Assembly (NCBI GenBank): GCA_002811645.1
Contig: PDIP01000106.1
Span: 55,783-117,702, forward strand
Direction: 5' to 3'
DNA: 61,920 bases
From: Corallochytrium limacisporum Hawaii
Lineage: Eukaryota; Protista; Pluriformea
Positions 39,866-54,564 of this stretch are shown one piece after another; the stretch's first letter is position 1; each line of letters opens with the position of its first letter. The notes under the pieces were generated by a model that worked only from the letters and a program-made list of their open reading frames with translations, was not told the DNA's origin and ran no database searches. Made by a program: the position numbers and the translations under genes.

Positions 39866-40061
39866 TCCCACGGAGAACTTATAGCGTAAACTGGGATAGT
39901 TGGCAAGTACTACTGAACCTTCAAACCGGGTAGACGGATAAGCATCACCATGACATTGTCACAATCATAACAGTTCGTAGAACACCGACTATAAACTCTC
40001 TTTAGGTTTTATTTTGACAAAAACAAACATAGGGACAAAAGGAAAACAAACCCGCAATTTG

Positions 40062-42011
40062 ATGAAACCGATCAATATGCGTCCGGTACGGTCCACAAGT
40101 AGTGGATCTGCAACCACATGGCTAGTTCATTGTATTGCCCTACTACTGGCATTTGTCAGCTGTACGGAAGCGTTCATCATGATGCCAGGTGTGCGACCTC
40201 GTGAGTTTGACGATGGCCAGAAAGTAATTCTCCAGGCGGTGAAGATGACGAGCACGAAGACACAGCTGCCGTATGACTATTACTATTTAAACTTTTGCGA
40301 GCCGGAAAACCTGAAATATTCAAGCGAAAGCCTTGGAGAGGTGCTACTGGGTGACCGCATTGCCAACCTGCCTCATGAATTGGCCATGCGCAAGAACAAG
40401 GACTGTACTGTTCTCTGTCACAAAACACTTAGTGCAGATGATATCAAGGAATTTGCTAAGTTCATTGAAAATGAATACCGGGTTCACTGGATGACAGATT
40501 CACTGCCGGGAGCCATGCGATTTCGTAACGCGGAGGGCCGAGAAGTACTCTTCCGTGGTTTCCCGCTGGGAACTGTGAATGAAGCTGGGTTGATCATACT
40601 CTACAACCACGTAGATATCACCCTTAGGTACCACCCCCACATTAGCACCGATCGTAAGGGACAGGCTCACGCCCCGACCACGCGGTATCGCATTGTTGGC
40701 TTCGAAATTACGCCCTTGAGCATGGAAGAGAAGGCTCAAGCCGCCAACGATAACGAACCTTGCCTTCCTGGATCGGCCGCGCCATACATCATCAACCCCA
40801 ATGCTGACCGGGAACAAGAAATCACCTTCACGTACGCAATTAAATGGGAAATGGTCGACGCGACGTGGGCTGCTCGTTGGGATGCCTATCTGCTCAGCGG
40901 TGACCAAGGAGTGCACTGGTACTCTATCATAAACTCCATCCTGGTGGTGATCTTCCTCTCTGGGATTGTGGCGGTGATCATTGTGCGGACGCTGCGGAGG
41001 GACATTGCACGCTACAATGAAGAGGACGAGGACCTAGAGGATGCTATCGACGAGACTGGGTGGAAGCTCGTGCACGGTGATGTATTCCGTCCTCCTCGGC
41101 ATGCTGGTCTGCTCGTCGCTTCCGTGGGCGTGGGAATGCAGATTCTGGGCATGCTGCTTGGTGTCCTGGTGCTGAGCGCCCTCGGTATGCTTAGTCCGGC
41201 CTCTAATAATGGCCAGATCAGTTTAGCTCTGGTCCTATTCGGGTTCATGGGTGTATTCTCGGGTTACCATGCCGCCCGCTTCTATAAGACTATGAAGGGC
41301 AAGGAATGGCACCGCACTGCTTTGCTCACAGGCACACTGTACCCTGCCATTGCCATTGGTATGTATCTCATGGTCGACTTTGTATTGCTGAGCAAACAAA
41401 GTAGCGGTGCCGTCCCGTTTTCTTCTTTCGTTGTCATCTTGCTGTCCTGGCTTGGACTGAGTCTACCGCTCGTATATGCCGGCTTCTACTTTGGCTATCG
41501 TAAGAAGGCCATCGAGGCACCTGTCCGAACCAATCAGATCCCCCGTCAAGTACCTGAACAACCTCTGTACCTGCGGCCCATTCCTTCGATGATGCTAGCT
41601 GGCATCTTCCCATTTGGTGCCGTCTTCATTGAACTGTTCTTTGTCATGTCCAGTTTATGGCAGGGCACGTTCTATTACCTATTCGGATTTCTGTTTATTG
41701 TGTTTGTCATTCTGATTGTGACATGTGCAGAGATCACCATTGTAATGGTCTACTTCCACCTCTGTGCCGAGGATTACCACTGGTGGTGGCCCAGTTTCAT
41801 GACTAGTGGTTCGCTGGCTGTGTACGTGTTACTGTACGCCATAGTCTATTACGTCACGCGCCTAGATATCGATACGATGGCCAGTACCATCCTGTACTTT
41901 GGCTACACCTTGATCATGGTATCTACCTTCTGGTTCATGACTGGAGCAGTTGGGTTCTTGGCCACATTTTGGTTCGTAAGGCGAATCTACGGTGCTGTTA
42001 AGGTGGACTAA
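40062..42011 (+). CDS. Transmembrane 9 superfamily (nonaspanin/EMP70), TM9SF4/2-like
   Basis: Signal peptide, KMTSTKTQLPYDYY, ESLGEVL.GDRI, HWYSIINS, ETGWKLVHGDVFRPP, PVRTNQIPRQVP, C-terminal KVD. Confidence 0.93.
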   Translation: MKPINMRPVRSTSSGSATTWLVHCIALLLAFVSCTEAFIMMPGVRPREFDDGQKVILQAVKMTSTKTQLPYDYYYLNFCEPENLKYSSESLGEVLLGDRIANLPHELAMRKNKDCTVLCHKTLSADDIKEFAKFIENEYRVHWMTDSLPGAMRFRNAEGREVLFRGFPLGTVNEAGLIILYNHVDITLRYHPHISTDRKGQAHAPTTRYRIVGFEITPLSMEEKAQAANDNEPCLPGSAAPYIINPNADREQEITFTYAIKWEMVDATWAARWDAYLLSGDQGVHWYSIINSILVVIFLSGIVAVIIVRTLRRDIARYNEEDEDLEDAIDETGWKLVHGDVFRPPRHAGLLVASVGVGMQILGMLLGVLVLSALGMLSPASNNGQISLALVLFGFMGVFSGYHAARFYKTMKGKEWHRTALLTGTLYPAIAIGMYLMVDFVLLSKQSSGAVPFSSFVVILLSWLGLSLPLVYAGFYFGYRKKAIEAPVRTNQIPRQVPEQPLYLRPIPSMMLAGIFPFGAVFIELFFVMSSLWQGTFYYLFGFLFIVFVILIVTCAEITIVMVYFHLCAEDYHWWWPSFMTSGSLAVYVLLYAIVYYVTRLDIDTMASTILYFGYTLIMVSTFWFMTGAVGFLATFWFVRRIYGAVKVD

Positions 42012-47697: not shown

Positions 47698-49508
47698 CGG
47701 AGTTGATGACCCATTCACACACTACCCTGTTGGGAAGCGGTGTGCACCAGTGGCGGCAGCCCCGCGATGGTGAGAGCTCCCATGCTCCCATCATCCGCCA
47801 GCGAAAGCAAGAGATTTGTGCAGCGCCATATTCGCACGAACCATGAGCTGCTGGAAGATCAAAAATTTTCTACATAGGGATCTGGAAAGTACCGTCGGCG
47901 GCTAAATACTAGATATATGAGCCTATCGATGCAAAGCGGTGGATATGCGTCTGCTGAATGTGTACTGCGTAGGCGGATGTGCGATCCTTGACTACGCTCC
48001 TTTCCGGTACCGCACTGCTGGCATATCTGTTCTTAGTGGCTTTTTTTTCAGGGGCAGGAGAGGTGTTGCTGGCGTGCTTCACAACAAATCATCTCGCGGA
48101 TGCAAAAAGTGCCCGTCGAATTCAAAACTCGAAATTCTTTTGCTCTGCGAAAGAGGCTTCAGACGTCCCAGTGTTTCATCATCGGTTTCGCCCCAAAACG
48201 AACGAAAATTAAAGTCCGTCTGGGCTAAACCGTTCGGTCAATGTTCGTCACGATATTTTGGCACACCTACCCTCGGCTGTATTCCCGTCTTGATGTCCAT
48301 TGCCGGCTGAGCACACACACACACACACACACCCGTGACAAGGCAAAAGGAAGCTCCGACGGAATATTTAAAAAAGGTACTATAAAGGAACATATATTGA
48401 ACAGGACAATGCGATCCTTGGTTCCCTTCTCCCCTCTCCACCATTCCCCTCACGCCCCGCTGCTTGGAGAGAAAGAAAAAAAAATGAAGAACGGGACGGT
48501 ATTGGGAGAAGGGAAGGGGAGGGGAGGGGGGGGAGGGAGAAAAAGAGAGAACCTTAGCGGGAAGGGTAAAAAAGAGTGAAACACATTGACCGGGGGAGAA
48601 GGGGGGAGGGCCCGCGGGGGAGAGAGAGAAGGGGAGAGGAGGAGGGGGGGGGGATTTAACAGTGTTTCACCATTTTTACGCCTTTCTTTTTGGTTTGTTC
48701 CCAATTTCTTCTTTTTTTTTTGACCACCGGAGTTTTCACCACCCGTGCCTGTTTCATATCTCTTCTCTTGTGGCCCTTCGGCCGCTAAATACGGACAGGT
48801 GGTTTGACGGTGGTGCCTGTGCCGTTACCCGCTGGTGTGTCATTTTTTGTCTTTCTTTGGCTTCACGGAGACATACAGGGAAGCGCCACCCTCTCTATCA
48901 CGGGGGAGGATCAGCTGGTGACACACACACACGAACGATTATGCGCCGCACCACCAATTCTGTGCGCCTATGCAAGAGGAAAACAAGTGGTTGAAATCGC
49001 TCCTCGACTTAGTGCTTCGGTGTCATGCGCCTGGACCCTTTCTCCGGTGTTGGCGCGTCAGCTTTCTCCTCTTAATTCTACTTTGTTCTCTTAACCGATC
49101 CATTTCGCCCGGGTTCTTTCGTTGGCCTTTCTGACGTTTCTTCTTAGTTTCTTGAATCCTTTGCATTCATTCAAGACAGGTATATCGGGCGTCACGTTGC
49201 CAATACTACTCATGGTGTTATTATCCCTCTTCTAAAACATTGGCGGACTGCAAGACATTGCTGTCTCTCGCACATTAGTTGCCGGAACAATGAGTGAATG
49301 AACAACACGGAAGTGTTGAAAGGGACTTTGAGCGCATCTCATGTGTAACAAAAGTTTTAAATTTTTCGTCGGCAACGAGTGACTTCAAAACTTTAGATCC
49401 CAAGGAGAGAAAACCGAAGACACTCGACACTAGTTTTCGGCCACCTAACTCTTGGAGAAAGTAGGAATCCTCTACGTACAAGCAAGAACACAGACACCTA
49501 CCAAAACA

Positions 49509-51440
49509 ATGGCAGCAGGCACCGAAGGCAGCGCGCATATCCAAGATGCGCAAAGCTTCTTGTTCCCACAAGCGTCACGGGAACGGGTTGAGCTCCTGCC
49601 CCACATTCCCCAGAACGGGTGCCACGTCCTCGTGGTTGAGGACAACATGATTATGCAAAAGGTGTTGATCAAATGGCTAAAGAATTTGGGAATTCGCACT
49701 TCCCAAGCTTTCGATGGTATGCAGGCTGTAGTGATGAGTCAGAAGGAAGTCTACGACCTAATCCTCATGGACATTTCCTTGCCCAATATGGACGGCGTGC
49801 GGGCCAGCAAAGCCATTCGGCATGACAGTCAGAATGTCAACACACCAATTATTGGTTTCAGTGCCTACGCCACTGCGGATGATATTCGGGAGGCGGAGGT
49901 TAATGATTTCCTGACCAAACCCATCAGTATCTCTGACCTGATTCGAACCATCAACAAATGGTACAAGTCTAACTCTACGAACAGTTTCCTTATGGAGCGG
50001 GACATTCACCGATTTACCAATAATCAGCCAGCAGATGCACCCCATTTTCTATTCGATAACAGCATCCTGGAAGCCCTCGCGGACAATCGGTCTGGTGCCC
50101 AACCCACCCGTACCACTGCACTTGTGGTCGAAGACAATAGCGTGACACAGAGGGTGATTTCCACGTTCCTGAAGAAAATGGACGTGGACGTGTTGCAGTG
50201 TTTCAATGGTAACGAAGCTGTGGAAGCATGCCAAGAGAAGCGTTTCGACATGATTTGGATGGACATGAGCATGCCCGTCATGAACGGTATCACTGCAACA
50301 CATATTATTCGCAACACAGACAATTTGAACCGGCAGACACCCATTATCGCCTTCTCGTCGTACGGTAGCCGTGAAGAGTACAGTGCCCTCGGTCTTTCTG
50401 ACTATCTGCAGAAGCCCTTCACTAAGGATGATCTGGCAGAAATGGTCAAAAAGTGGCGCCCATTCCCAGGCAACAGTCCTAATTCCGGCGCTGATCTGAA
50501 AGGAGGCGCAAATGGAAGTTTGGAGGCTGTTGCCGGTGGTCTCGGTGCCGGTGCAGGCAACGACCCGTCCGGCCCTTTGGCTGGTGGCGCCCCATTGGCA
50601 GGGGCAAACGACGTGGGACGAGGGGTCAAGACCGAGCAACAAGTCAATCTCATCCTCGACAATCTGTCCAACAGTCCTACGGCTGGAGGTGGCAGTGGCA
50701 CGAGGGGATCATCGGCCAGTGGCGCGAGTGGTGCCGGCAATTTGATGGGACTTGGTGGAGGTGGCAATGCATTCGGTAGCACGCGGGACACTCTGGGCAG
50801 CTCGGGCAGTGGTCCTGGAGCCTTTGACTTTATGGGCATGCCCACCGGTGCTGGCGTACCAAACAGTCAAAAGATAAACGGCAGTGGTCCCGGAGGCATT
50901 GGTGGTCCCGGCGCGGCGGACTTCATGAGCGCAAAGAAGGTCAAAACTAACGAATCTGGTCAGTCCATGCCCCCCGGTGCGGTGGGAGCCGATATGCCTG
51001 GCTTGGGTGGGCGCCAGAAGACGGTCTTCGAAGAGCGCAGAGACAAGGGAGAAATGATTCGCATGTCCCATAATTCGAAGGAGCGCATGCGCCGCAAAGA
51101 AATTGTGGACGCAGTTCATTGGTTCCGTAACGTTATTCCCGGCGGACACGACAAGATGGACAAGGCCAGTGTGCTCAAGATTGCGGTGGAGTACTACCGC
51201 GTGCTTGAACTAACCCTTGGTGAGGAGCGCCTGAATGAGATTCGGCAGCAATTTGTCAACTGTCCGGTTGATGGGGTACATCCCTTGATGCCGGACGGAC
51301 CGGTCGGGGAGGTTATGTCCCCCGGACTGCAGCAGTACTGCGTCCGCATGGGCATGAATCCGGAGACTGTACAGCAGGAGACCATGCGTCGACAACGCGA
51401 GGCCATGAACCAAAATCAATCTAAAGAATCGGGAAACTGA
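49509..51440 (+). CDS. Tandem response-regulator receiver (REC-REC) plus bHLH transcription factor
   Basis: REC1 about 49623-49961 (VLVVEDN, ILMDISLP.MDG, GFSA, FLTKP); REC2 about 50115-50456 (LVVEDN, IWMDMSMPVMNG, AFSS, YLQKP); Gly-rich linker; bHLH about 51060-51209 (HNSKERMRR.EI...FR.VIP...KMDKASVL..AVEY). Confidence 0.9.
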   Translation: MAAGTEGSAHIQDAQSFLFPQASRERVELLPHIPQNGCHVLVVEDNMIMQKVLIKWLKNLGIRTSQAFDGMQAVVMSQKEVYDLILMDISLPNMDGVRASKAIRHDSQNVNTPIIGFSAYATADDIREAEVNDFLTKPISISDLIRTINKWYKSNSTNSFLMERDIHRFTNNQPADAPHFLFDNSILEALADNRSGAQPTRTTALVVEDNSVTQRVISTFLKKMDVDVLQCFNGNEAVEACQEKRFDMIWMDMSMPVMNGITATHIIRNTDNLNRQTPIIAFSSYGSREEYSALGLSDYLQKPFTKDDLAEMVKKWRPFPGNSPNSGADLKGGANGSLEAVAGGLGAGAGNDPSGPLAGGAPLAGANDVGRGVKTEQQVNLILDNLSNSPTAGGGSGTRGSSASGASGAGNLMGLGGGGNAFGSTRDTLGSSGSGPGAFDFMGMPTGAGVPNSQKINGSGPGGIGGPGAADFMSAKKVKTNESGQSMPPGAVGADMPGLGGRQKTVFEERRDKGEMIRMSHNSKERMRRKEIVDAVHWFRNVIPGGHDKMDKASVLKIAVEYYRVLELTLGEERLNEIRQQFVNCPVDGVHPLMPDGPVGEVMSPGLQQYCVRMGMNPETVQQETMRRQREAMNQNQSKESGN

Positions 51441-52596
51441 ATGCCAATGCAGTCGCTAAAGAAGCGGGTTTTGGAACTTACGAAGAACAGCACAGGACCC
51501 CTATTCCCTTAGGACCGAACCACAAACCCTCATACGCTTCTCTATCTATTGCTGCAAGGCACACGAGCAGAATACAAAAATTTCATTTGCAACATCATAT
51601 CCTTCTGTCTTTTGTCATCTGCGCTTGTGATTTTAGATACTGGGTTCAAGCCAGAAAGCTTGCGCATCGAAGCATGCCACTCTGTCTGACCTTCCAGTCT
51701 TATTTACACACACACTCTCTCTCTCTCTCCCTCTCTCCGTGCCCTCCCCACTACGGCACTCGACCACTTTTCCGTCCGTTGATTCCCGCCCCCCGCTGGT
51801 TGGTTGCCTGCTGAGAGTCAGGACCTATACCGGCACAACGAGGGCAGCAAAAAGTTTGACTGTTTGTTCAGTACGAACAGGCGAGGTGGAGCGGTGCCGT
51901 TGGTGGACGGCAGAATGGCGGGTCAGTGCGTGATGAACCGACACCTGCGGTTGGTGTGAGTGGTGTTGCACGGGGAAGGCCGAAAGCCAAGAAAAAGGGG
52001 GGGAAAGGAAGGGGAATGCCGAGGTCTCATCCTGCAAAAGGGTCACAGAATGGGGCTCCTGTTTGCCTCTTCGCCAGCAATAAGAGTTTCGAGGACTCTA
52101 CTTACCTTACCACTTGCCTTTGGAACACACTTTCTGGTTTGATATGGTACTAGTTACACACTACATCAGAACATGGACTCATGTGTTATTTTGGGATTGA
52201 TACAGAATTGAGTTCGGATGGGAGAACAAGGACGAGATCGGCACTTGCCAACCAGCGAGATCGTACTACTCGGTTCTATTTGAAGGTGGGAACGTAGTAA
52301 AGAAAGAGGGAATTACGGAGGGGAAAATCTATTCCTTACAAAATTTTGAACGATGGGAAACCAGTTCAATAGATTTGAAGGTCTGCCCGAAGGGCACCAC
52401 CGAAGTTTGGACCCGATCGAGCATTTTAAGGTTCGCGTTACCATGCACAAAGTGGCAGCACGATCTGTATCGAAACTGCTGGCAGACGCAACCGGAAATC
52501 CAAAGAGCTTACACAATGCAACATTTTCTAGGTTTTTCCTATGGGTGTATCAGGTATCCTTTACATATCTTCTTAGTTCGTAGCGACCCAAGGTTA

Positions 52597-54564
52597 TCAG
52601 TCCTGGAATTGCAGAACCTGGCCTTGTGTCCTGAGCAGCTCATTCCAGACCTTCTGCATGGCCATAGGCAGGATCTTATGCCATTCATGGTCTACCCTCT
52701 CGGGCATGAGACCATATTCGTATTCTCCGTGGGTCCAATTAGTCGACGAAGTCGGTGACAACTTACGGAATGTTGTATAACCTGGAACATGCTCAAGAAG
52801 TGATTCTGCCGGATCTTCAGGCCGCGACGAGAACGCCGATGATTTCTTCCTTGTCACCTTCCTACTATATCCCACCAGCACAGGTACATAGGTCTGCTTA
52901 ATGTGCGAGAAGCGATGTGACACGGGGGTCAGCAATGTTGATGATTTCGGTAGAGACTTGAGGCCGGGCGGTAACGCTTTGCTGTCTTTTTGGTCGGCAA
53001 TTTCCTGCAGGAAGCGTACCATGTGCCCTTGCATTGCTTTGTCTCCCCCATCGTCGTCTTCCGCAGCGGTCACGAGCGGGAACTCCCAGAGTCCGTGCAA
53101 CAGTCCACCGGTTTTCTTCTTGCTACCAGGCTCGTGTGGTGCCCGTGCGCGTCGCATCAGCACCCGACCATCCCTATTCACAAGAATAAAGGCGTAGTGT
53201 CTCTGTTCGATGGGGGGTTTAGCCTTCCTCTTCCGAGGATAGACTTCTACGGTCGGTGTAAAGAAGGTGCTGGTGTCAACGAACCTTGGGTTGATCTGTA
53301 GGGGCTCCTCCTCGGAGTGTTTCTCCCTTTTCCGCGTTCGCCTTTTGTCCTTTGTGTTCTTTTGAGTGTTGGACTGCTCAGGACCCTGTTGCCATTGCAC
53401 ATCCGCCAAGACTTCCAAGGGCAGACACAGATCGCACTCTTCGATGTCTTCTTGTTCTCCTTTTACGGTGCCCATGCAACCTTTGCCTCGACCATTTGTG
53501 AACAGCGCACTGAACCGATTCTGTTTGAATTCCACCGTCTCAGCATTTGCCAGGCAGGACTCACGGACCGGACACTGTCCACACTTTGCATTTTGAGGCG
53601 TGCACACAGTAGCCCCCAGTTCCATAAGCGCTTGGTTAAAATCTCCGACTCGGTCGTCGTCCTCTCGACCCAACCCGACTACGAGCGCCCGTGCTTGTGC
53701 CCAGATAAAGTCAAGAGTGGGTTTTGTAGCAGTGTCTGCACCAATCGCACGCTGCCGGCACACGACGCGGATGACGTTGCCATCAACAATCGGCACCGCA
53801 CGCCCAAAGCCAATACTTGCGATGGCACCAGCAGTATAGGCACCAACGCCTGGTAGATGTCGTTGAAGTTCCTCAGCAGTACTCGGTAGAAACCCCCTCA
53901 ATTCCTCAGATTCATATACTACATACCGCGCGCCTTTATGCAGATTGCGGGCGCGGGAGTAGTAACCCAAGCCCGCCCAGTTCTTTAGTACTGTGTCCAA
54001 ATCAGCATCTGCCAGGGCCTTGAGTGTGGGAAAGGCAGCCATCCAACGTTTAAAATAGCCCACAACGGTCACGACCTGAGTTTGCTGGAGCATGATCTCA
54101 GAAACCCAGATCTCATACGCGCGCTGTTGTACAGCTGGCTGGCGGTCGTAGTCACGCGTAGTCCAGATCTTCTTAGGCACGTCGGTGCGCCAAGGGAGAG
54201 TACGCCTGACCTTGAGATACCATGCCAACAGATTTTCCTGAAAATCAGGTACTTCATCATTGTGAAAAACGTGCAAGGTACGACCGAGTATGGCTTTGTT
54301 CCGGTGACTCAATTTGGGGCGATGTCGGGATACAGGTGGCTTGTGATAGTCGACACCACCGCTGGTAGGCTCTTCTTTGACAGTGATTTCCTTCTTAAGG
54401 TTCCTCCGCTTAGGTTTTTGTACAGGTTCCTCTAGGGTGTGGGCATCTTCGTCGTCGTCGATGTCGAAGTGGTCACTATATGAAACTGGTTTAGTCATTC
54501 GGAGTCTCTTGGACCGTCGTTCGGTCATTGGGGGTTCTCCGCAAGTATCCTGCAGACCAGGCAT
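52597..54564 (-). CDS. MUTYH: A/G-specific adenine DNA glycosylase
   Basis: LL.WY...RR.LPWR, WVSEIMLQQTQV, WAGLGYYSRARNL, HhH LPGVG.YTAGAIASI, VDGNV.RV, 4Fe-4S C-x6-C-x2-C-x5-C, DIEECDLC, GLWEFP, HRFSH. Start is ATG 54564 or nearby. Confidence 0.95.
   Translation of the reverse strand: MPGLQDTCGEPPMTERRSKRLRMTKPVSYSDHFDIDDDEDAHTLEEPVQKPKRRNLKKEITVKEEPTSGGVDYHKPPVSRHRPKLSHRNKAILGRTLHVFHNDEVPDFQENLLAWYLKVRRTLPWRTDVPKKIWTTRDYDRQPAVQQRAYEIWVSEIMLQQTQVVTVVGYFKRWMAAFPTLKALADADLDTVLKNWAGLGYYSRARNLHKGARYVVYESEELRGFLPSTAEELQRHLPGVGAYTAGAIASIGFGRAVPIVDGNVIRVVCRQRAIGADTATKPTLDFIWAQARALVVGLGREDDDRVGDFNQALMELGATVCTPQNAKCGQCPVRESCLANAETVEFKQNRFSALFTNGRGKGCMGTVKGEQEDIEECDLCLPLEVLADVQWQQGPEQSNTQKNTKDKRRTRKREKHSEEEPLQINPRFVDTSTFFTPTVEVYPRKRKAKPPIEQRHYAFILVNRDGRVLMRRARAPHEPGSKKKTGGLLHGLWEFPLVTAAEDDDGGDKAMQGHMVRFLQEIADQKDSKALPPGLKSLPKSSTLLTPVSHRFSHIKQTYVPVLVGYSRKVTRKKSSAFSSRPEDPAESLLEHVPGYTTFRKLSPTSSTNWTHGEYEYGLMPERVDHEWHKILPMAMQKVWNELLRTQGQVLQFQD

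Follow-up and report, generated by a model that had tools for sequence, protein, structure and literature searches.

The stretch of DNA analyzed here, which we will call the window, comprises 61,920 nucleotides of Corallochytrium limacisporum Hawaii (Pluriformea; assembly GCA_002811645.1, contig PDIP01000106.1, positions 55,783 to 117,702 of the forward strand), and positions given below without further label are counted from its first letter. At 49509-51440, on the forward strand, it carries a gene for a 643-residue protein in which two response-regulator receiver domains (REC1 and REC2) are followed by a long linker, a basic helix-loop-helix (bHLH) domain and a C-terminal tail. We will refer to it as the REC-REC-bHLH protein. 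Its coding sequence is a single open reading frame (ORF) without internal stops, with the earliest in-frame ATG at 49509 and the stop codon at 51438-51440; the translation is identical to an entry already held in the EukProt collection, and its domain content is given by Pfam.

Both receivers are recognized by the Pfam model Response_reg (PF00072), with a whole-protein E-value of 1.3e-45 and 154.5 bits (cut-off 30.2), and the NCBIfam models that match the protein do so through these two domains only. REC1 (residues 38-152; 49620-49964) shows, in Pfam and in alignments, the canonical E44-D45, D88, S118 and K137-P138, and REC2 (residues 202-317; 50112-50459) the canonical E208-D209, D252, S283 and K302-P303. 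The predicted phospho-acceptor aspartates are encoded at 49770-49772 (D88, kept in 14 of the 14 family members having REC1) and at 50262-50264 (D252, invariant across the family). The two domains are 39% identical to each other. In an AlphaFold2 model made from a 16-sequence alignment, each adopts the (beta-alpha)5 fold, with predicted local distance difference test (pLDDT) values of about 90-97 for REC1 and above 90 for REC2. Compared with solved structures by Foldseek, the model finds its best match in the tandem receiver of PleD (roughly residues 36-320; E-value 7e-16), and solved single receivers, among them that of Candida Sln1 and the Sln1-R1 chain bound to Ypd1, match with template modeling (TM) scores of 0.8-0.9. 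Judged by their residues, both receivers of the window protein look phosphorylatable.

The linker (residues 321 to about 519; 50469-51059) is rich in Gly, Ser, Ala and Pro and predicted to be disordered (pLDDT 30-38 in the AlphaFold2 model, i.e., <50); its length across the family is 59-188 residues. The bHLH domain (51060-51257) matches Pfam HLH (PF00010) over residues 518-562 (E-value 4.9e-8; 33.1 bits, cut-off 20.7), and is modeled with helix 1 at residues 523-542, a loop, and helix 2 at residues 552-583 (pLDDT of the helix-loop-helix 82-91). Its basic region, R-M-S-H-N-S-K-E-R-M-R-R, presents H521, E525 and R529 as His5, Glu9 and Arg13 and aligns with the DNA-contacting residues of Max (HNALERKRR); it appears to be of the CACGTG-binding type, which would make this hexamer the expected DNA motif. 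PAS, Myb/GARP and HSF domains are absent from the protein, in which Response_reg and HLH are the sole Pfam matches at E-values up to 1. The tail carries predicted helices at residues 605-613 and 618-641 (51321-51431; pLDDT 48-76 in the same model) and is without counterpart in the homologues of the 16-sequence alignment.

A profile of the family's bHLH domains matches MYC2, Max, MITF, SREBP-1a, BMAL1/ARNT, USF, CLOCK, TFEB, Cbf1 and Pho4, all of them E-box binders that belong to groups B and C and have solved structures, with E-values from 3e-11 to 4e-5; the best are MYC2, Max, MITF, SREBP, BMAL1/ARNT and USF (3e-11 to 1e-8), and no solved relative stands out among these matches as an orthologue. 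In the genome of Corallochytrium itself, the same profile reaches 100 bits on this gene and at most 45 bits on the other bHLH genes, which points to a distinct bHLH lineage. A search of a word-indexed protein database with the bHLH only (residues 505-600) returned the query alone, the E-value scale being too harsh for a domain of 50 residues. Within or near the gene there is no CACGTG, and autoregulation through an E-box was dropped as a candidate for want of it. In the window as a whole the hexamer is rarer than expected, with 6 occurrences against 16.7 in dinucleotide-preserving shuffles; 99 of 100 shuffles reach 6 or more, and all six sites of the window lie between 27.2 and 37.4 kb.

Most of what an initial annotation had read from the letters of the window can be maintained. 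It described two receivers, each with an acidic pair, an acceptor aspartate, a serine switch and Lys-Pro, and every one of these positions is present, as are the two aspartate codons it named; the long Gly-rich linker and a bHLH with His5/Glu9/Arg13 (HNSKERMRR) are likewise where it placed them, with an HLH hidden Markov model match above cut-off. Its remark that the bHLH has no clear zipper needs qualifying, as the model gives helix 2 a length of 32 residues, an L...L/D..F motif common to the family lies just past canonical helix 2, and a short zipper-like extension of this helix in the model is conceivable. The likeness to SOHLH and TCFL5 seen by eye finds no support, as neither is among the solved-structure matches of the family profile, a search in which no direct comparison with them was made.

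Transcript-sized contigs and strain variation

The gene occupies a transcript-sized unit without intron at 49244-51570 of the forward strand, defined by contigs of two public sequencing runs (hereafter X1 and X2) that come from different samples, studies and strains, and whose labeling as RNA is in both cases a guess. This unit leaves a 5' leader of about 265 nucleotides and a 3' trailer of about 90-130 nucleotides around the coding sequence. One contig of X1 spans 49244-51532 with 0 differences from the window, and one contig of X2 spans 49244-51570; no joints are seen in either across the gene, so that the chimeric assembly which the initial annotation had considered finds no trace in the contiguous sequence of two strains. 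The flanks at 48000-49243 and 51571-52325 have no contig coverage in X1 or X2, which fits untranscribed intergenic DNA, and the contig depth over the gene differs from that of the contig of the neighboring gene. Taken together, the missing joints, the bare flanks and the differing depth form the pattern expected of transcript assemblies, and by this pattern the gene is expressed.

The X2 contig differs from the coding sequence of the window by two substitutions only, at 49985 and 50528, both synonymous, and by an 18-nucleotide in-frame indel at 50884-50901 (forward strand), a segment inside the linker that is absent from X2. The indel amounts to a six-codon length polymorphism of the Gly-rich linker. 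Two synonymous changes together with a deletion in the linker indicate that the folded domains are under purifying selection and that the linker is less constrained. In the same run, the contig of the neighboring gene shows 7 substitutions in about 240 nucleotides (52615-52850), and the second strain is by this measure noticeably diverged.

A holozoan family and its receivers

A profile search of 1.84 billion representative proteins, of which the best 150 matches (at least 196 bits) were listed, gave at least 15 further members covering both receivers and the bHLH, with the architecture confirmed by Pfam. Besides Corallochytrium, the named members belong to at least eight choanoflagellates (Salpingoeca urceolata, S. 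infusionum, Choanoflagellata sp. UC4, Acanthoeca spectabilis, Acanthoecidae sp. 10tr, Didymoeca costata, Mylnosiga fluctuans and Monosiga brevicollis) and two ichthyosporeans (Chromosphaera perkinsii, listed as ‘Nk52’, and Amoebidium parasiticum), and several unnamed metagenome and transcriptome sequences add to them. The protein of Monosiga brevicollis (XP_001748279.1; UniProt A9V6B9) is about 27% identical to the window protein and shows REC2, the bHLH and the C-terminal end of REC1, its gene model being seemingly truncated at the N-terminus; public databases have listed it for years as an uncharacterized “Response regulatory domain-containing protein.” No animal or fungal protein is named among the matches listed, a list in which single-receiver relatives could hide and on which the absence from filastereans rests as well, and these matches give no evidence of the family outside Holozoa. 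A second search of the word-indexed database, with the family alignment, brought no new members and missed known choanoflagellate members too, a blank that carries no weight, and a feature search of the ESM Atlas returned generic bacterial receiver clusters only, which are uninformative about the family. The sequences describe an old holozoan family, and the qualification of the fusion as lineage-specific in the initial annotation has to be given up in view of the choanoflagellates and ichthyosporeans that share it.

Residue conservation bears directly on whether these receivers are still phosphorylated. It could be argued that they are pseudo-receivers which never take up phosphate and serve as constitutive dimerization or partner-binding modules, as in the pseudo-response regulators (PRRs) of plants, with the bHLH being regulated in some other way; indeed, single receivers of the family can degrade. 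In all choanoflagellate members REC1 is without its Met-Pro loop and the second residue of its acidic pair while REC2 is intact, and in Amoebidium REC1 is kept and REC2 is degenerate. However, the window protein keeps all five catalytic positions in both receivers, and 16 of 16 members share D252, K302 and P303 of REC2 without variation, together with H521, K524, E525, R528 and R529 of the bHLH. In 15 of 16, REC2 has the set (E/D)D, D, S/T and K-P. A canonical REC1 is present in the window organism, in Chromosphaera, in one metagenomic relative and in Amoebidium, the first three having both receivers intact; every member retains at least one canonical receiver, and none has lost both pockets. 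Invariant residues in REC2 without any double loss are the pattern that selection for phosphorylation would produce. The same distribution weakens the suggestion of the initial annotation that the two receivers integrate two kinase inputs: for choanoflagellates and Amoebidium, a single phospho-acceptor with the other receiver acting as an adaptor, by analogy with PleD, fits better.

The history of the two receivers was followed in a tree of 91 domains and 120 alignment columns, with support from the Shimodaira-Hasegawa-like approximate likelihood ratio test (SH-aLRT). All family receivers form one clade with the receiver of a Rim15-like kinase from the Corallochytrium genome (SH-aLRT 96), within which REC1 is one group (87) and REC2 plus the Rim15-like kinase receiver another (84). 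Both the REC1 and the REC2 clades split into choanoflagellates (98 and 97, respectively) and ichthyosporeans plus the window protein; since the species split is repeated in each, the tandem duplication predates the choanoflagellate, ichthyosporean and Corallochytrium lineages, with moderate support in the tree. REC2 and the Rim15-like kinase receiver may share an origin, a grouping that can also be taken in favor of pseudo-receivers.

The nearest matches to the receivers beyond the family are bacterial multi-receiver hybrid kinases, which could suggest an artefact, with receiver and bHLH genes that have nothing to do with each other brought together by chimeric gene prediction, faulty assembly or contaminating bacterial DNA. 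This reading is effectively refuted: a single ORF without stops is covered by joint-free single contigs from two strains, the same architecture recurs in complete transcripts of at least eight choanoflagellates and two ichthyosporeans, and a bHLH was found in 0 of 14 bacterial and archaeal control genomes. The neighboring genes also belong to typical eukaryotic protein families; the flanking genes encode EMP70 (40014-42011), itself typically eukaryotic, an HhH-GPD glycosylase and a subtilase, and no ORF of 250 residues or more is listed between the EMP70 gene and the REC-REC-bHLH gene. A bacterial origin of the receivers was considered and rejected as well, as the bacterial proteins, such as that of Flammeovirga (four receivers), score high only by virtue of the three to five receivers that each contains, and the tree places the family receivers in a clade of their own with a receiver of the host genome.

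Phosphorelay components in the genome

Six-frame searches of the assembly (24,109,830 bases in 286 contigs) revealed ten ORFs with both HisKA and HATPase_c, at least eight of which also have a receiver of their own, and two histidine-containing phosphotransfer (HPt) proteins of 123 residues (G000:C175) and 255 residues (G000:C88), both with a His-containing motif. These are the upstream parts that the His-Asp phosphorelay proposed in the initial annotation would need. The kinases were read from 3.2-kb loci, in which their N-termini are covered in part, and their sensor domains include PAS, GAF, ETR1_N (ethylene-receptor-like), CHASE, PilJ and bacterial sensor types. Two hybrid kinases on one contig carry ETR1_N (E-value 2.6e-24; G000:C229:44148-47339) and CHASE (E-value 2.2e-15; G000:C229:1585-4791), i.e., sensors of plant-hormone-receptor type in a relative of animals.

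Further receiver proteins are few, namely a stand-alone receiver of 237 residues, the Rim15-like kinase, a GAF-PAS-REC protein and two short or weak matches. The stand-alone receiver (G000:C7:51295-52008; Response_reg E-value 4.2e-25) lies on the same contig as the REC-REC-bHLH gene, about 54 kb upstream of it, and is a possible second output of the phosphorelay or a phosphate sink. The Rim15-like protein (979 residues; G000:C176:437810-440749) combines Pkinase with a C-terminal receiver whose pocket is canonical (AEDN...MDIMMP...AFTT...KPF). The GAF-PAS protein (1036 residues; G000:C279) has a terminal receiver match of 22.9 bits, below the cut-off, and no HisKA match, and may be a degenerate or atypical kinase. 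No protein of Skn7 type was seen in the assembly, the nine HSF matches lying on contigs other than those that bear receivers, and among the 26 HLH matches of the genome a receiver accompanies one, that of the REC-REC-bHLH gene. This protein is thus the only receiver protein of the genome with a detected DNA-binding domain.

A complex of REC2 (residues 198-322) with the 123-residue HPt protein was modeled with an interaction prediction score from aligned errors (ipSAE) of 0.66, against 0.00 for the best of three controls; it passes the mark set for this score, which 51 of 78 solved complexes attain, as do 2 of 108 mismatched pairs. At least 97% of contacts are shared among the three runs, and the partner has a pLDDT of 90. 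In the model, the HPt protein covers residues 208-213, 252, 254, 256, 284 and 302-303 of REC2, and its His59 contacts D209 and N210 and lies in the canonical geometry against helix alpha-1 and the D252 pocket. As similar complexes have been solved (e.g., Ypd1-Sln1), the predicted docking shows compatibility and likeness, not specificity.

These components also speak to the pseudo-receivers discussed above. Ten kinases, at least eight of them hybrid, and two HPt proteins would have few other receiver proteins to feed, and the modeled HPt docks at the active site of REC2. With the conservation of both pockets in the window protein, this leads us to disfavor the view that the receivers are never phosphorylated, which we consider unlikely.

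Proposed mode of action and place among response regulators

We read the gene, with a probability of roughly 0.6, as a genuine, expressed and intron-less gene whose product is a response-regulator transcription factor that acts in the nucleus as part of a His-Asp phosphorelay, with a bHLH switched by dimerization. Hybrid histidine kinases with PAS, GAF, CHASE, ETR1_N and other sensors would pass phosphate to an HPt protein, which would hand it on to Asp252 of REC2, with Asp88 of REC1 as a probable further acceptor in Corallochytrium. Phosphorylation would then rearrange or dimerize the tandem-receiver stem, as in PleD, and dimerization of the stem would bring two tethered bHLH domains together as a pair on a palindromic E-box of CACGTG type. 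Because a bHLH domain binds DNA only as a dimer, receiver phosphorylation could in this way control both pairing and E-box binding. Phosphorylation-induced dimerization is favored here by analogy with PleD and with regulators of the OmpR/NarL type.

Several points weigh against this reading. Phosphorylation and phosphotransfer, the aspartate used, dimerization and action through it, and DNA binding with its motif are all steps that we infer. The disordered linker of 59-188 residues provides no obvious rigid coupling between receivers and bHLH, and it is for this reason that the dimerization mechanism draws on analogy. The HPt-REC model may reflect the predictor's memory of solved complexes and is silent on which of the receivers the HPt protein serves; REC2 groups with the receiver of the Rim15-like kinase, a class of receiver that may or may not take part in phosphotransfer. 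The RNA status of the two runs is a guess, and the scarcity of CACGTG, with none near the gene, gives no hint of autoregulation or of targets.

On the other hand, phosphorylation might relieve an inhibitory contact, or control nuclear import, stability or the recruitment of a co-activator, in which case dimerization would not be the switch. Control of this kind has been proposed for plant type-B Arabidopsis response regulators (ARRs) and for fungal Skn7. A long disordered linker suits a tethered inhibitor, or a regulated degron or nuclear localization signal, better than it suits a rigid stem-to-bHLH connection, and bHLH domains usually dimerize unaided; nonetheless, in structure the tandem receivers come closest to PleD, which is switched by dimerization. 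We regard this possibility as rather doubtful, bearing in mind that it is a variant of the dimerization-switched factor, that the probabilities of the two overlap and that no result separates them.

The outputs known for eukaryotic response-regulator transcription factors are HSF (Skn7), Myb/GARP (type-B ARRs) and CCT (plant PRRs), and the window protein can be set beside two of these systems. With the type-B ARRs it shares an N-terminal receiver, a C-terminal DNA-binding domain and hybrid kinases feeding via HPt, and hybrid kinases of CHASE and ETR1_N type are present in its genome also; the plant proteins, however, have one receiver and a Myb/GARP domain, whereas the holozoan protein has two receivers and a bHLH. 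Skn7 is likewise a response-regulator transcription factor of an opisthokont, phosphorylated via the HPt protein Ypd1, but its HSF domain is N-terminal to a single receiver, and the window protein is without HSF.

Regarding mechanism, bacterial PleD (REC-REC-GGDEF) has the same tandem-receiver stem, in which one receiver is phosphorylated, the other is an adaptor and dimerization activates the enzyme, a division that parallels the one canonical and one degenerate receiver of choanoflagellates and Amoebidium. PleD differs in ending in GGDEF (diguanylate cyclase), whereas the window protein has a bHLH, reached via a long disordered linker, and both of its receivers are canonical; the two are about 20% identical, and the likeness is one of mechanism only. 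Finally, the group B, bHLH-Zip and bHLH-PAS factors (Max, USF, MITF/TFE, SREBP, Pho4, Cbf1, ARNT/BMAL1/CLOCK and MYC2) share with it His5/Glu9/Arg13 and the helix-loop-helix, and those of bHLH-PAS type also the fusion of a signaling domain to a bHLH. The window protein differs from them in having no PAS, N-terminal receivers as its signaling domains, an unproven zipper and no orthology to any of them.

No description of a receiver-bHLH protein was found in the literature, in a search whose coverage leaves out most subscription journals, which agrees with the initial annotation, where no characterized protein of this kind was known. Since members already sat in public databases as uncharacterized proteins, we consider REC-REC-bHLH a real variant, so far undescribed, within the response-regulator transcription factors, and do not see in it a category of its own. 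Histidine kinases have been counted in eukaryotes, with 1 in Monosiga, 11 in Capsaspora and 0 in animals, in a work where their outputs are not treated and where two-component signaling is reported as absent from animals (PMC6324907).

The fusion of receivers to a bHLH would represent a regulatory link that is older than animals and was later discarded; before the origin of animals, His-Asp signaling probably led directly to a bHLH factor. More tentatively, at close to but short of an even chance, the family may be the ancestral holozoan transcription-factor output of the phosphorelay, and it is the only one detected in this genome; such an output would pre-date the split of choanoflagellates, ichthyosporeans and corallochytreans, would be paired by phosphorylation, and would have disappeared along the stem of the animals together with the histidine kinases. 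In animals, the regulation of cell types depends centrally on the bHLH family. If the output was ancestral in this sense, environmental two-component sensing would have been directly coupled to bHLH regulation just before animals, a coupling open to test in a transfectable relative of animals, as Corallochytrium has reportedly been stably transfected. As the decay of REC1 and REC2 is reciprocal elsewhere and both are intact here, the Corallochytrium copy is the most suitable for working out what each receiver does. The family also offers a concrete output by which holozoan histidine kinases, so far little studied, can be tested, including those of this genome with ethylene-receptor-like and CHASE-type sensors, and a natural bHLH whose dimerization is perhaps switched by aspartate phosphorylation, which would be of interest to both signaling and synthetic biology.

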